Shown one piece after another: positions 8,466-18,500 of a stretch of DNA of 64,000 nucleotides. Source of the DNA: Oopsacas minuta (Eukaryota; Animalia; Porifera); NCBI GenBank assembly GCA_024704765.1, contig JAKMXF010000299.1, positions 248,001 to 312,000 of the forward strand, read 5' to 3'. Every line of letters starts with the position of its first letter. Position 1 is the first letter of the stretch. Made by a program: the position numbers and the translations under genes. The notes beneath the pieces were generated by a model, which was not told the origin of the DNA, made no database searches, and saw only the letters and a list, made by a program, of their open reading frames with translations.

Positions 8466-9185
8466 TCATTTTTCGGAATCTAATACAGAGTTTTTTGCAG
8501 TACGCATATCGGATTTAACTTTGAGCTCAGCAAGATGTTCCGTATGAGATCTTGTACGAGCACGTTCTCGAACCTGTTCAAGATATGCTAAATTCTTTTC
8601 TGTTTCTCTTTTCAGAGAAGATGACATTCTATTTTCAAGAGATCTTATCTTCCACGTTTGTATAAAGTACCAGAGAAAAGCGAACCCAGTCATGAATAGT
8701 ATAACTTTGAAATGTTTCAAATTTGTATCACGAGTACTTTGCTTGTTAGTCACAGTTGGAAAATTATTATCTAACCATTTGATAAAGCTTGGGACATCAT
8801 CTGGATGAGGGTATTGAGGATCGGGTTTATGGATAAATGGATCTTTTTGGAAGTTTGGTGTAGAAAATATGTTATCTAATCTAGAATTGTATTCTAGTCG
8901 TGAAGTAGAATTTGAAAGGTGAGTATAAGCATCTTTTATTTCTAAAAATTTCACAGTTGCTTCTTTAGGATTTGTGATATTAAGATCTGGGTGATAGAGT
9001 TTGGATAATTCTAAGAAAGATTTCTTGATTTCTGCTAAAGTTGCGTTTCTTGGCACATTAAGAATTCCATAATAATCTGGTATATTCTTCTTGTCTGGCG
9101 TGGAGTGGAATTGGTATTTCAAAAAAGGTATCTTTTGCAATTTGAAACCAAGAAATATCCTAATTCCCTTCCTCAGAAACAACAT
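8466..9185 (-). CDS. DnaJ/Hsp40 type C protein (DNAJC4/DNAJC30-like), probably mitochondrial membrane
   Basis: Basic/hydrophobic presequence-like N-terminus, J domain DYYGILNV...LYHPDLN with intact HPD, and one TM helix (VILFMTGFAFLWYFI). Confidence 0.85.
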   Translation of the reverse strand: MLFLRKGIRIFLGFKLQKIPFLKYQFHSTPDKKNIPDYYGILNVPRNATLAEIKKSFLELSKLYHPDLNITNPKEATVKFLEIKDAYTHLSNSTSRLEYNSRLDNIFSTPNFQKDPFIHKPDPQYPHPDDVPSFIKWLDNNFPTVTNKQSTRDTNLKHFKVILFMTGFAFLWYFIQTWKIRSLENRMSSSLKRETEKNLAYLEQVRERARTRSHTEHLAELKVKSDMRTAKNSVLDSEK

Positions 9186-9220
9186 CACTTAAACAAATTT
9201 GAATAACTCAAGGTTTGTTA

Positions 9221-9802: not shown

Positions 9803-12800
9803 TCAGAGCAAGTCGTTAGGTAGTAGATGGTTAGACCAGATTTGTTCCTCGAATTGTGGAATGTCATCTTGAGGGAAATCAGAAGTATTTGGGAAAGAAA
9901 TAGACGAATCGGACGAAAAAGTAGATTCAATACTACCTGACAGTCCGCTATAAGCCCATGGAGTGGTCTCTCTGACAGGGGAACGAGGGGGCTCAGCGAA
10001 TTTACCGATAAAGTAGGATAACTCATTTGGATCAGTACAAATATCACAGGTATCATATGTATCAGGTCCAAGCATGCTCTTGAGAGCGTTCCTAGCTGTC
10101 TCAGCATCGTTTGCTTGTTTGAAAGTTAGGATAGCCGTTCGGTTTTTCACACTGTGAGCTACACTCGTACTCCCTAAGGGAGAGAAGTACCGTTCTAGCT
10201 GTGTCTTATCAATCTAAGAAGAGGGAGTAATATATAAATGAAAATATATGTAACAAATTGAATATTGAATTAAAAAAAATATAATTTACCCTTGTATTGA
10301 GCCCAGTGAGGAACAGCCAAGCTGCATCAGATCGTTCCAGTCCTATTTCAGCAGGTAACGAGTGTGTAAGTAAATCAGATTTAATTCCCATAGAATTATT
10401 GCTGTTGCCTTCCATCATGTAGTTAGGCATATACGAAGCAGACGGATAATTCTTGTTGCTAGGAACTAATAGAGGATTGTACTTGTCTGGAAATTGATTT
10501 GGAGACTTGTTATGCGAGCGAGTAGATAGAGAATCTACTACAAGACTTGAAGTTAGTTTAGATTGGTAGATATCTGTTGGAGTGAAAGGTTCATAGTCTA
10601 AAGTGTTTTCTAGTTTATTTGGGTAGAAGAGACGTGGTGAAGGAGGCGCAAAGCTAGGTGCGTGTAAATTAGCTGGAAGAGATGAAAATAGGTCGGAATC
10701 TTTCTCAGGTTCGTGCATATGTCCTGGGGGATAGAATGCCAACGCCCCAGGTGAAAAGGTATGTGCTTGTGTGCTGAAAGATGGAGAAGGAGGTACACGA
10801 TCATATGGCTCATGAAAAACTGATTCTTCAGGATCTATTAACTTATCTTCAAAAGCATCGTATAGTGAATTCAATTCTGAGAAATTAAATGACTCGTCTG
10901 TCTGTAGTGACGACATAGAACTGTTCATTTTCCTCTGTCTATTGTAATCTGAAACTTGTTGATCAATCAAGGAAGAACTACGGATGATATTATACTTCAT
11001 TGGTGAGTCGTGTCCATGGTACGAGGGGTCTAATGATTTAGTATAGTGCATTGGATCTTTTCCAATTGATTTCGATTCATTCTTATCATCATTATCATTA
11101 AACATATGGAACTTTACTAACTGCTGTACTATCCATTGTTGGTTTTTAGCTTGCCCCTGTCTTGGCGTTTGTGAGGGAGGATAGCCCATTGAGTATTCTT
11201 GTGGTGTAGAATAATGCTGTTCATAAGATGGAGTGTGTGATTCAGTGAGGGAAGGGATATACATTGATTTGTTGATGTATTGGTTACCCATGGGAAATCC
11301 ATTCAGGGGTTGAGCTATATAAATTATAAATTATTACATATATGGATCAAGATTTCAGTGGTTCCCAACTTGGGGGTCCATGGGTGAAAAGGTTAGGAAC
11401 CGCTGAGTTAAATTACGAATATTTGGCATACTTTAGGAACTTAAATACAGGTTCGAAAACATCTGTAGTCGGTAAAATTTGTTATATGTTAACAATTAAC
11501 GATAAACAAACAAATGTCAATTACCTGTAACATTACTCAATTGCTGTTGTAGCAGGTTGATAAACATGTTAGATATTTGTAAGTTAAGATTTATTTGTGG
11601 TGTGTATTGTTGTTTATTTCCTTGTTGATAAAGTGAAGACATTAGCTTCTGTTGTTGTGACTTCGTCTCTTGTAGCAAGTACTGAATAGCTTGTTCTAGA
11701 TTGAGTCCTTTTTGCATTTGTAGATACTACAATACAGAATAATAATTGGAAATTCTATACGCAAGTGTAATTAATACAAACCTGTTGCTTCATTAGCAAA
11801 TTAATTACGTTACGTTGCATTATGAATTGTTGCATGCTTGGGCCTTGAATATTAGATTCTGAGAAATGTCTCGAATACAAAGAATTCATGTTACCATGGT
11901 TGTATGTATGTGAGGTTGGCATTCCTCCCATCGTATCATCTATGATAATGTAGATAATTAAAGGGTATATCTCGTTACATATAGCTGATAGAAAATACCT
12001 GAAATAGCTGTTGGAAAGTCAAAATTGCTTTGCATAATTTCTTGTAAAATACGTTTCTATAAATGAAATAATGTAAAATAAACGTAATGTATAGTAGAAC
12101 CTCGTTCATACGAACACAGCGATTCAATTTGTATTACTCCAGATAAAGCCAATACATTTTGGCCCTCCGTTGGTGTTCGTATTAATGAGATTCCAATGTA
12201 TAAATATTGTAATAATCACGCATGCTTACCTGTTGATCTGTAAGAGAAGTATATTGCGAAGAATGTTTCGTATTATTATTCATTTCATAAGGTCCAAACG
12301 AGTTATAAGGCGATTTGAGATACATAAGCATGTCATTATCAGGTTTAAGAATCTAATAAAGTGATATTTGACATTAAATTGATATTGTATTAGAGAAAAG
12401 ATTCCATTAATACGAACCTAACGTTATGTCTATCAATAAGGTAATACTATTAACTCATAGATGAATGTTAATCTATTTAGTCTCAATGGAATGTTTAATT
12501 CAGATAAACTACTCAGAAGTAATTGGAGAAAAGATGGATAAATAAGTTATGAAAATATCGTGCTAGTCTATCAAAGAACTGGATGTAATAGATTAAGTTA
12601 CGGAACGATAACAAAGAATGAGAAAAATTTGATAATAGATCACTTATTGAATAGTTGGAATAATACCAGAATAGTGGATATCTATTCAAATGTAATATTC
12701 CAATATTAGAGGCGGAATAAATATTCGCCAGTTGCAATTAAATTATCATACTGTCCAATATAGCCGTGATAAGTGTTCAGTAAATTTTTATAGAAATTAT

Positions 12801-14193
12801 GTATGCATTTATGGTTAAATCATTATCTTACCGGCTTTTCTGGTTGACCCCAAAAGTCAGTTCCATCATCAAAGTTATCTTTAGGATTCATAGGTAATTC
12901 TCCCCATCCAATAGGAGCTGTTTCTAGTGTACCAACATTATGCTCTCCTAGAGAATTCAATCTTTTCTTACTTTTCACTCCTCTTCCAATCGCTCCACGA
13001 CCTACTCCATTTATAACAGGCTTAATTTTGTTTTGCAAACCTCCTACTATTCCTGGTTCTCCTTGAGTAAGTGTAGGAGGTAGACGGGAGGGACTAGAAC
13101 TGTTGCTATTAGATTCCTGGACAAAAGGAGGAGGGCTTGCACCAGAAATTGCAACTGACGGTGGCGTAGAATTACCTGAAAATCGTAATAATAAATCCTA
13201 TGGATGCTTCAATCATTAGCAAAATATGTTACGCCGTTTCCACAAAGTATTTCGCCCTGGTTAATCATTTAATCATGTATTTATCAAATAAAGTGACTGC
13301 AAGATAAGAACTTATACGTAACTAGATTGTATAGAAATAATACATAAGATTATGAAAGTAAAAAGTACGTATTCCACCACTCAATAGAACATCACTATGT
13401 TATCGTGTAGAAACCAGAAATTATCTTAGAATGTAGACGTGTAGGAAGAATTATGAAAAGCTCAACTAGCATTATACAAGTGTTTTATGCTAATTGGACA
13501 AAATTGTGAAATATTGACTTTGCAAAAATATATTTTCGGAAAGATACGAACTTACATGTTTGAGTATCCCAAACGCTAAATTCGCTTTCGCTCTTAACTT
13601 CATCGTCTCTGACAGCACCTGGTTCTTGTAGATATAGTGTACAGCCTAGAGCGTTGAATCCCGTGTCTACAGACCCCCCTTCACCAGAATTACTCTCGAT
13701 GACATTTGATTGACTTATGAGTGATATTTGACAGTTATCAGGAGATATTGGATTGGAAGGACCACTAGAATCAGATTTGCTATCAGAATTGGTGGGAGAA
13801 GTGCTTTTAACTCTTAGTGAATATATAGGATAATCTAATTCAGGTGAATTACGTCTGCAAATAATAAATGTATGTAAACTATGCTATCAGTATTTGTAAA
13901 ATTGCAACTTACCTTTCCATTTCAGGAGAATTTCTATCAGAAGAATGACCGTAATTATTGATAATATTTTCTGTAGCGATATCTTGTAGCTGAGCAGTAT
14001 TAAGTGTAGGCAGAGGTCTATATCTACCGTGAATAGTAGATTTACTAGGAGGACGTACTCTGAAGGGGTGCATCGAAGAGCCCAGGATATCCTGCTCTAG
14101 AGGAGGACAGAGTATCGAGTAAGGATCTGTCATAGATGGTATGTGTGAGGGCGTGAGTACTGTTGCATATTGGCCTGAGTCTGTTTTGTACAT
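9803..14193 (-). CDS. TNRC6: GW182/TNRC6-like miRNA effector, 9 exons: 14193-13913, 13854-13556, 13175-12832, 12352-12230, 12056-11999, 11939-11782, 11726-11525, 11314-10290, 10213-9803 (2901 nt, about 966 aa)
   Basis: All junctions are GT-AG with consistent phase. The product has an Ago-hook-like IGWGELP...FDDGTDFWGQP, a Q-rich middle, PAM2-like motifs, an RRM beginning WLFLTGLNTRIDKTQL (TNRC6 WLVLxNLTPQIDGSTL) and C-terminal LLPNDLL (TNRC6B/C LLPGDLL). The start codon is tentative. Confidence 0.8.
11356..11405. mobile_element. 50-bp hAT/Charlie-like miniature element in TNRC6 intron
   Basis: 14-bp TIR CAGTGGTTCCCAAC / GTTAGGAACCGCTG, resembling Charlie-type ends. No matching 8-bp TSD. Confidence 0.55.
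12092..12198. mobile_element. MITE family B (Tc1/mariner/pogo-like) in TNRC6 intron
   Basis: TA|TAGTAGAACCTCGTTCATACGAAC ... GTTCGTATTAATGAGATTCCAATG|TA. Confidence 0.8.
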
Positions 14194-15574: not shown

Positions 15575-18500
15575 CTACTTGAACTCGTGTTTAGATTCAG
15601 AAACAGCAAGAGATGCATCAGGGATTTTCTTGTGGAATCCTTCTTTCCCTCTCAGCCAATAAGTTGTCATGCGTCCCTTCCCTTTCACGTCACGTGTTCC
15701 CCTACATTCCAACTGGTAACCACCTAGCTTGTTCAATATGTTAGCTGTATCTTCACTCACATGTACTCTTAGAGCTATTGTAAGTTTAGTAAATTAATAC
15801 GAGAAAAATGCACAATCAACTCCCGTAATATCGAAGCTCAAAGGACCGTGATAATTACTTCTATATGATCGATGAAATTTATGCTTCTCTGACAGTTTGG
15901 GGCTATATTTGTATAATTTCAGACTTCGATATCAGCAGGTGTTTCGACAAATCTGAGTTCAATGTAACGGATATTGACTGTATTTTATTTGATTTATACT
16001 TACCTAGTCCACTTGATTCCATACGAGATGATACATTGACTGTGTCTCCGAACAAACAATATCTAGGCATCTTAAGTCCAACAACCCCAGCAACAACAGG
16101 ACCTGAATGTACCCCTATTCTCAGCTGCAGAACAACATCCGGTTTGTGACGGATAGTGAAACGAGAAATATCACTCAACAGGTGAATAGCCATCTGACAG
16201 ATTTCCCCAGCGTGAAGGTCTCCATTACGAATGGGTAATCCTGACACAACCATGTCTAGTAGATACAAATAATAAATCAGTGAAATTTACACTCTGATAA
16301 TATACTTACAAGCATCCCCAATAGTTTCTACCTTGTACACATCATAGTTATATAATGCATGATCGAAAGCAGAATATAAATCATTCAAGAAGCTAACAAC
16401 TTGCATGGGAGTACTTCCACCAGCAATCGAAGTAAATCCAACAATATCACTGAAGTATATTGTAACACAATCAAACGTCTCAGCTTCTACAGTTCTTCCT
16501 TCTTTCAGTGCTTCGCTAACAGATCTAGGTAACATCCCTATGTAACAGAACAGAGGAATAAATTCATTAATATTCAAATGATATAATTATAGCATATTCC
16601 TTACTGGAGAGTAGATCTTCAGTTTTCTGTTTCTCTACAGCAAGCTGTCCTGTCCTAGCTGCTACTACTTTCTCCAAGTTTGTAGAGTATTTCTCAAGCT
16701 ACAAATACAATAGAAATACATAAACTATGGACTATCGTTATTACAAATTCGGAGTAGAATTTTCAACACTCCCTTTGGTATCATATTAACAGGAGTCTAT
16801 TGTATTACAATAAATTACAGTGAAACGCTTAATAATTTTGGTTCCATGAGAGAAATGCAATTGCAATTTGATAAAAGTTATAATTAAATTACAAATTAAT
16901 ACTTTGTTCCACCTCAAATACTATTAGAAATATTCAAATTTATGAAATATAATACTAACCATGTAGACGAGGTTATCGATTAGTTCTCCTTTCTGTGGGT
17001 TAATCTCTTCTAGAGAATTGAGTACTTCGGGTATGGTAGGGCGCTTACGAGAATCATCAGACCAACATCTGGACATTAACTAAAAGAGATAATTTTATGA
17101 ATGATAATTCTAGAAGGACAGTTTACCTGAACTCACAGATTTCAAATCGTATTCGCAATCTTCTTTCAAGTTAGGTCTGAAATGAGGGGGATTTCCTCCT
17201 TTGTATCTCTCAGCCAAATTCTACAAGAATCACATATAAAATACCGAAATAATTAGTATATAATAATAATTATAATAATACCGGTGGTAGAGCATGTATT
17301 GCATGATTCTTCGTTCCACAAATAGTGTCTAGAATCTCAGTAGGCAGCATGTAATCCAGGAAATCTGAAAACGGACCTTCATGATTCACCATTTCTGACA
17401 TAATTAGCCCGAGACTAGAAAGAAAATCGTGGATAAATAATATCAGCTAGAAAATACAATATTATATACTTACCAGTATACATCACCAGCTGGTGTACCA
17501 TTCTCCACATGATCTGGATGTATAACTCCACACTTCAAAAATTCTGGTGGTATCCATAACAGAGATCTAGAATTATGTGATAAACTTCTATAATCAAAAC
17601 TACAATTACTAACTGTGCAACGCTTCTATCTTCAAACTTAATAGTAGTGTATTGTACTTGGCTATTCTGAGGAATTCCAGAAATATCAGCTCTATCACCA
17701 AAGTCTTGTAGTCCTCTACTATGCATTGCTTCCTCATCGATCGCCTCTTTAATGGATTTGAATGGTTTCTTAGGCACAGTATGTTGTCCAGACTTAAACA
17801 TATGTAGCCCGAAATCTACAAATACAAATAATAAACAGTTTCAAATTAAATGCTGGATAACTTGTAGAATTTCTCACCAGTTATCTTTACACACCATCTG
17901 TTATCTACAACACAATTTGAAGATTTCAGTCGTCCGTGAGACTTGATAGGAGATTTGCTAAGATAGATCATTCCACGGCAAATATCCTAAACAATAATAT
18001 TATAAAGCAAATAGGAAATACATAGAAATTGGATGCAAACCTTCATCATTGAATATTTGAAATTCCAATCGATTTTAACTTCAGATGAAGAGAGAAGATC
18101 ATCAAGAGATCCCTAAATAAACACAAAATTAACAAGCAATGTATATAATAATTATTAAATCTACCTTTCCAGCTAATTCAATAAGAATAGCAACATTCGG
18201 TGCTTCCAAGCAAGCACCTATGAAATTCGTAACGTTAGGATGTTTGAGATCTCTCATTTCCTTTATTTCTTTTCTGAGAGTTAAAGTATCTATGACAGAG
18301 TCTTTTCTAAGTCGTTTTATGACAACAGCATTGTCTCTATACATTCCCTCATTCCGTATTACATGTCTACAAATATTATACAATACAATAAATACACCAA
18401 GGATATGTCATTTATATCGTGGTGGCAGTAATAGCAAGTTAATATAACTCTATATGGCAAATACAGTAGAACCTCGTTAATACGTACACCAAGGGACCGT

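Follow-up and report, generated by a model that had tools for sequence, protein, structure and literature searches.

Can a GW182 protein be built with hardly any tryptophan (Trp)? This question is raised by a gene of the glass sponge Oopsacas minuta, which lies on the minus strand of a 64,000-nucleotide stretch of contig JAKMXF010000299.1 (positions 248,001 to 312,000; here called the window). GW182 proteins combine an N-terminal GW-rich region binding Argonaute (AGO) with UBA-like, Q-rich, PAM2 and RRM parts and Trp-containing flanks (PMC4615383; PMC5314787). Many redundant Trp motifs are attributed to them, so that it is difficult to establish in model animals what they minimally require. 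The first-pass annotation of the window had proposed a minimal GW182/TNRC6 protein with few Trp. The protein described here, which has a single hook and one each of PAM2, RRM and tail Trp, is strongly constrained across the sponge class and is probably a divergent GW182 orthologue that would bind a single AGO.

A tryptophan-poor protein conserved among glass sponges

The hook, a Q-rich stretch, PAM2, an RRM with an extra helix and a Trp-bearing tail follow each other in the canonical GW182 order, and the protein is mostly disordered. An exact recount agrees with the 7 Trp first reported (0.7% of the residues), which are W189 (FSVWD), W284 (IGWGE), W302 (DFWGQ), W549 (QQWIV), W821 (AAWLF), W916 (TPWAY) and W956 (QIWSN), with GWG and FWG as the only GW/WG sites. 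Five glass-sponge species were compared, namely Oopsacas, Vazella pourtalesii and three syntenic genomes from ENA (L022-L024). The N-terminal half contains three Trp in total in all five. Six of the 7 Trp are invariant across all genomes, and W956 (IWS) is lineage-specific, being limited to Oopsacas and Vazella.

The translations of the nine exons provide 962 whole codons, to which four split codons (R, C, D, A) are added. In order, they are residue-identical to the NCBI protein LOD99_7275 of Oopsacas minuta (P0024), so that the reconstruction of about 966 amino acids (aa), with GT-AG borders and agreeing phases, is exact. The gene had also been described as hidden and easily missed, which is not the case, as the exact model is already part of the public annotation and merely unnamed ("hypothetical protein" at NCBI, "RRM domain-containing protein" in UniRef). 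It is single-copy in the Oopsacas assembly, which was scanned genome-wide (61.46 Mb, 365 contigs).

A full-length transcript of Vazella pourtalesii with an open reading frame (ORF) of 955 aa (P0008, EukProt) was found by a word search with exon H and a cluster listing. It aligns with P0024 from end to end at 76% identity and agrees at every junction and at the start Met, by which the junctions and the 5′ end are checked against transcript data. These two public records were used for all whole-protein analyses. The three ENA assemblies carry the gene in synteny, with a guanylate cyclase gene upstream on the same strand, and contain the nine exons in unchanged order, with identities of 31-86%.

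Most pairs of species are saturated at synonymous sites, whereas the non-synonymous divergence (dN) is 0.16-0.26. For the closest pair, the ratio of non-synonymous to synonymous rates (omega, dN/dS) amounts to 0.10 for the gene as a whole and to 0.08 for the hook exon. Strong purifying selection acts on the gene, and the low Trp content is conserved throughout the group. Because dN/dS is about 0.1 while synonymous sites are saturated, the gene is not decaying; the idea of a degenerating scaffold, raised in the first-pass annotation, is not borne out, and the hook itself is invariant across species.

A further record, L025 (ENA ERZ26869290), is an 11.9-kb contig on which exons G-H-I of the Vazella-like gene occur in several copies, some direct and some inverted. 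These copies look like an assembly or amplification artefact and not like a real duplication.

The candidate AGO-binding site and the silencing half

Among the disordered parts of the protein, the hook shows the highest conservation. Its core, DDGTDFWGQP, confirms the DDGTxxWGxP string read earlier from the sequence and is conserved across the glass sponges. The human hook peptide is PDNGTSAWGEP (PMC3925969); compared with its part DNGTSAWGEP, 7 of 10 positions match. When the pattern D[DN]GTxxWGxP was searched as DNA on both strands of the genome, one match was obtained, which is at this locus, and the reversed control gave 0. The surrounding segment LETAPxGWGxLPxxPKxNFDDGTxxWGQPEKP hardly varies among the four aligned genomes and is identical between Oopsacas and Vazella, and the exon C alignment has 50 invariant columns. 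W284 and W302, both invariant in all species, have 17 residues between them. For an AGO-binding site of TNRC6, a disordered stretch must contain two or more Trp with a spacing of at least 10 residues (PMC9262622). Judged by sequence, the pair fits this spacing rule for one AGO-binding site.

Just upstream of the hook, exon C also encodes an RGG/basic stretch (NGVGRGAIGRGVKSKKRL; window 12955-13008, minus strand). It was called invariant, with NG(V/I)GRGAIGRG(V/L)K(S/C)KKRL in the relatives, and might serve in nuclear localisation or, as an RGG box, in RNA binding.

The Q-rich region proposed earlier is present in exon G, where 17 of the 67 residues are Gln (25%, compared with 6.5% overall). 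The sequence NLEQAIQYLL in the region of exons D-G resembles the third helix of a UBA domain and might be what is left of one.

Exon H contains two overlapping PAM2 motifs, FSTQAHTFSP and FSPGALAFYP. In composition-preserving shuffles of this exon, one match to the PAM2 core occurred in 1.2% of the cases and two or more in 0 of 20,000 (P<5e-5), and the matches of exon H are the only ones among the 16,335 open-frame residues of the window. FSPGALAFYP fits the key positions of the general PAM2 consensus LNxxAxEFxP. Four of the five species carry it unchanged, and the fifth (L024) has FSPKAPAFYP with two substitutions, in which the key A, F and P are kept. Of the two generic PAM2-like motifs originally named, this one is therefore a conserved PAM2, whereas NLHAPSFAP is present but does not hold as PAM2, given its form in the relatives (Table 1).

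The segment QAKNQQWIVQQLVKFHMF around W549 is predicted to be helical in the AlphaFold2 model, where the helix covers residues 66-88 of the Vazella isoform P0003 and has a low confidence score (pLDDT). Within the M1 region, the segment takes the place that CIM-1 has in human TNRC6C (CIM1, QSRLPQWTHP). By analogy, a link to CIM-1 may be taken as a lead only.

The RRM is interrupted by a 76-nt intron (10214-10289). Pfam RRM_1 matches residues 822-876 of P0024 with 20.8 bits (cut-off 20.7), whereas searches with single exons gave a sub-threshold RRM_1 match on exon I and nothing else. The AlphaFold2 model, calculated with an alignment to P0003, shows the order b1-a1-b2-b3-a2-b4-a3 at a pLDDT of 73-88; a model of exon I alone (pLDDT 58) was uninformative. 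In fold searches (Foldseek, VIA) the top PDB matches are all RRMs, and the RRM of Drosophila GW182 (2wbr) aligns over 87 of 89 residues with a Z of 8.2 and 17% identity. W821 lies in the RRM core. Generic RRM leads were obtained for exon I in the ESM Atlas and nothing for exon H. Thus, of the TNRC6-type RRM claimed for this protein, the RRM fold stands, whereas profile and fold searches place it no nearer to the RRM of GW182 than to others.

In the tail, the glass sponges share the conserved end LPN(D/G)L(L/I), and the terminal LLPxDLL string noted before is present in Oopsacas as LLPNDLL. A Vazella isoform, i2 (P0010, 824 aa), continues beyond exon H into the following intron (…LNVRVSLLM∗). 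It would be without most of the RRM and the entire C-terminal tail, and could represent intron retention or an unspliced precursor.

Candidate partners were searched in the Oopsacas genome, and AGO and Drosha are both present. The Argonautes found include at least three of the AGO clade and two of the PIWI clade. A Drosha orthologue (human DROSHA, E 2.6e-72, compared with 4e-19 for Dicer), further Dicer-like loci, a PABP-type MLLE and CNOT9 were found as well. The Drosha orthologue (G000:C352:46522-48921) is a single exon of 800 aa with two RNase III domains and a double-stranded RNA-binding domain.

From these features we infer a possible mechanism. W284 and W302, possibly with W189, would insert into the Trp pockets of the PIWI domain of one AGO-clade Argonaute, so that the sponge protein would bind one AGO, compared with up to three. 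PAM2 would dock on the MLLE of PABP, and W916 might recruit CCR4-NOT weakly through the pockets of CNOT9. An additional contact to CCR4-NOT could be made, perhaps by the invariant QQW helix at the place of CIM-1 and/or by conserved non-Trp motifs. On the scale of the group, glass sponges might run repression guided by microRNAs (miRNAs) or AGO through a single-hook GW182, with recruitment of the decay machinery mainly via PAM2-PABP and conserved non-Trp motifs, e.g., the invariant QQWIVQQLVKFHMF helix, and not via multivalent W-motifs; this wider proposal is tentative and in our judgement rather doubtful.

Table 1. Features of the GW182-like gene of O. minuta in window coordinates.
Feature	Position	Strand	Remarks
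Whole coding region, 9 exons, 966 aa	9803..14193	-	GT-AG borders, matching phases; stop 9805-9803
Exon A	14193-13913	-	start Met and Trp-free N-terminus
Exon B	13854-13556	-	Ser-rich; invariant W189 (codon at 13571) in EVKSExELSxWE
Exon C	13175-12832	-	RGG/basic stretch, then candidate AGO-binding site
Candidate single AGO-binding site LETAPIGWGELPMNPKDNFDDGTDFWGQP	12838..12924	-	invariant W284 and W302; from conservation and motif
Hook core DDGTDFWGQP	12842-12870	-	
Exons D-G, conserved helical/Q-rich middle	11525..12352	-	
Exon D	12352-12230	-	
Exon E	12056-11999	-	
Exon F	11939-11782	-	
Exon G	11726-11525	-	25% Gln
Exon H	11314-10290	-	PAM2 motifs and RRM beta1
Segment QAKNQQWIVQQLVKFHMF (W549)	11100..11153	-	predicted helix; invariant in 5 species
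Overlapping PAM2 motifs FSTQAHTFSP and FSPGALAFYP	10728..10778	-	FSPGALAFYP at 10728-10757
PAM2-like string NLHAPSFAP	10644..10670	-	relatives have NLHPSSYEP
Exon I	10213-9803	-	rest of RRM and C-terminal tail
RRM and extra C-terminal helix (PNELSYFIGKFA)	9992..10322	-	beta1 in exon H, rest in exon I
Disordered C-terminal tail	9806..9991	-	TTPW(G/A/S)Y invariant; W916 at 9958, W956 at 9838

The window is AT-rich (~35% GC), gene-dense eukaryotic DNA. Directly upstream of the GW182-like gene, on the same strand, lies a receptor guanylate cyclase (window 15575-16577 and beyond), the last exon of which is 93-95% identical in three other glass-sponge assemblies, with the gene order kept. Downstream, at a distance of 615 bp and on the same strand, a gene for a J-domain protein (DnaJ, E 6e-19) was found at 8466-9188 (minus strand); its product has a presequence-like N-terminal start and a hydrophobic C-terminal segment. 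The DnaJ gene is absent within 10 kb of the GW182-like gene in three related genomes, and its adjacency in Oopsacas is probably a coincidence. It was considered as one part of a split cnidarian DnaJ-GW182 fusion, which was rejected, as it sits 3′ of the gene and no adjacency exists in the three relatives.

Probable assignment to the GW182 family

Membership in the GW182/TNRC6 family rests on architecture. The models Ago_hook (PF10427), M_domain (PF12938) and TNRC6-PABC_bdg (PF16608) have no match anywhere in the Oopsacas genome, whereas the same profile search recovers Piwi, RNase III, MLLE and Rcd1 as a positive control. Because no other locus matches the three models and the gene is single-copy, it is the sole GW182 candidate in this genome. 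A genome scan for clustered TGGGG (WG) gave 244 compared with 331 in the control, mostly repeats, and is uninformative on other GW-rich genes.

Several observations weigh against the assignment. With the threshold relaxed to E<=10, the three family models and UBA still match neither the exons nor P0024 nor P0008, no UBA-like domain was found in the protein by Pfam or PDB searches, and PDB sequence and profile searches returned no TNRC6 or GW182 chains. A GW/WG-rich N-terminal region is not present, as the first 490 aa contain GWG and FWG only. The hook pattern was modelled on the human hook and relaxed once the sponge sequence had been seen. Furthermore, PAM2 is of the general type and is without the GW182-specific form EFxPGxPW. 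In the fold search, 2wbr is tied with about 50 other RRMs (Z 8.1-9.3), and PDB searches gave weak generic RRMs only (RBM3, E 0.056; cwf5; CIRBP). The sponge protein does not have the several W-motifs by which M1, M2 and the C-terminal region of GW182 recruit CCR4-NOT and PAN3; the invariant candidates in its silencing half are W916, the one clearly disordered Trp, and W549 in its predicted helix. Word-based full-length searches found relatives in glass sponges only. Finally, in two sponge AGOs compared with human Ago2, K660 is changed to R or L, L694 to F and E695 to S or H, and TNRC6 binding is lost in the K660A/L694Y double mutant of human Ago2.

In the same two AGOs, F653, R688, C691, Y698 and P700 are kept among the key residues of the Trp pockets of Ago2 (10.1101/2025.10.18.683247; PMC9262622). 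R688, C691 and P700 among them belong to pocket 3, which therefore seems intact, as does part of pocket 2, whereas pocket 1 seems changed and might be filled or reshaped in glass-sponge AGOs. This pattern is compatible with a partner offering only two or three Trp. The F659-K660 pair is lacking in the AGOs at L003:1390-2151 and L004:1381-2142 (C221, C88), which read CKGRLP and CKGHLP.

Further searches returned nothing, namely phmmer against PDB with exons C, H and I and two metagenome scans. A phmmer search with exon I against 1.84e9 representatives gave two spurious repeat proteins only, which is a false blank. The exon-I ORFs of the relatives (136 aa; P0011, P0014, P0015) are hidden under the cluster representative P0003 or under an exon-H-only fragment. 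Because they are clustered under other representatives, exon-sized queries can give false negatives in a representative search.

With all GW182-specific hidden Markov models silent, a generic PAM2, an RRM no nearer to that of GW182 than other RRMs and no relatives found outside glass sponges, the protein might also be a PABP-interacting RRM protein specific to glass sponges. It would then not descend from GW182, would have gained its hook by convergence or chance and would act via PABP without Argonaute. This explanation is unlikely, with a residual weight that keeps it in serious consideration. The 7-position hook match is unique in the genome and occurs in the one gene that has a Q-rich region, PAM2 and a C-terminal RRM in GW182 order, the hook surpasses all other disordered regions in conservation, and AGO, Drosha and CNOT9 are present, yet no alternative GW182 candidate was found.

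A canonical GW182 with GW-rich N-terminal exons missed by the gene model is very improbable. The start Met of the NCBI model is common to Oopsacas, the Vazella transcript and the three syntenic genomes, in-frame stops lie 19-31 codons upstream of it in all four genomes, and the sequence further upstream shows no protein-level conservation in these. In the 1.3 kb that separate the start Met from the stop of the guanylate cyclase (15575), there is no open stretch with GW or WG. Because the start is conserved, is preceded by stops in four genomes and is also used by the Vazella transcript, no GW-rich N-terminus is missing. Such upstream exons, which the first-pass annotation had placed at 14.3-15.5 kb as a possible objection, were looked for and none was found, so that the Trp-poor state stands. 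Least probable of all is a decaying gene or pseudogene stripped of its Trp motifs, for which a Trp content lower than in an ordinary protein might speak, as opposed to an intact frame in five species, transcription in Vazella, the low omega, and six Trp and several long segments that are invariant despite saturated synonymous sites.

Significance and comparison with known GW182 proteins

GW182 has been reported in the demosponge Amphimedon queenslandica and the placozoan Trichoplax, and the predicted scores of AGO- and CCR4-NOT-binding W-motifs are lowest in basal animals (PMC4615383). Both the occurrence of GW182 in sponges and the weak W-motifs of basal animals are thus already known. No paper was found which joins Oopsacas or Vazella with GW182/TNRC6. 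New are a class-wide, strongly constrained single-hook form with hardly any Trp in its silencing half, a PAM2 of the general type and a sequence outside the reach of all family models. If it is a true GW182, it provides a natural minimal scaffold on which binding and tethering can be tested, a piece of evidence on the origin of miRNA repression in animals and a warning that domain-model searches overlook the family in glass sponges, where it carries the label "hypothetical". If the protein indeed acts as a minimal effector on a single AGO, multivalent Trp binding and condensate formation would be later additions. If it is not a GW182, glass sponges would be without a recognisable GW182 despite the rest of the pathway, which is also informative.

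The GW182 proteins of Amphimedon and Trichoplax, compared here by their description only, were found by sequence and domain searches, whereas the glass-sponge protein escapes such models.

Human TNRC6A/B/C and Drosophila GW182 (Gawky) have the same module order, including the extra helix of the RRM, and are also mostly disordered. They have three AGO-binding sites and dozens of GW repeats, in contrast to one site with two Trp in the sponge protein. Their PAM2 has the form EFxPGxPW, whereas the sponge motif is of the LNxxAxEFxP type, and the sponge protein is without a Pfam match to Ago_hook, M_domain, TNRC6-PABC_bdg or UBA. The M2 region of Drosophila GW182 alone contains six Trp (PMC3553986), compared with one invariant disordered Trp in the whole silencing half of the sponge protein.

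Among non-bilaterian animals, GW182 of Nematostella has the same overall layout; it binds its own AGOs and represses through its C-terminal domain (PMC5314787; PMC3840309). It has 11 W-motifs in the CED, a PAM2 of the GW182 type and an N-terminal DnaJ domain (PMC3840309). None of these is found in the sponge protein, and the difference in the number of W-motifs belongs to the points that oppose its assignment to the family.

A different deviation is represented by AIN-1 and AIN-2 of C. elegans, which are divergent and GW-poor like the sponge protein. They are not known to have an RRM or a canonical PAM2, both of which the sponge protein has. Their domain architecture is non-canonical, and they still act via the Trp pockets of AGO (PMC5147811).

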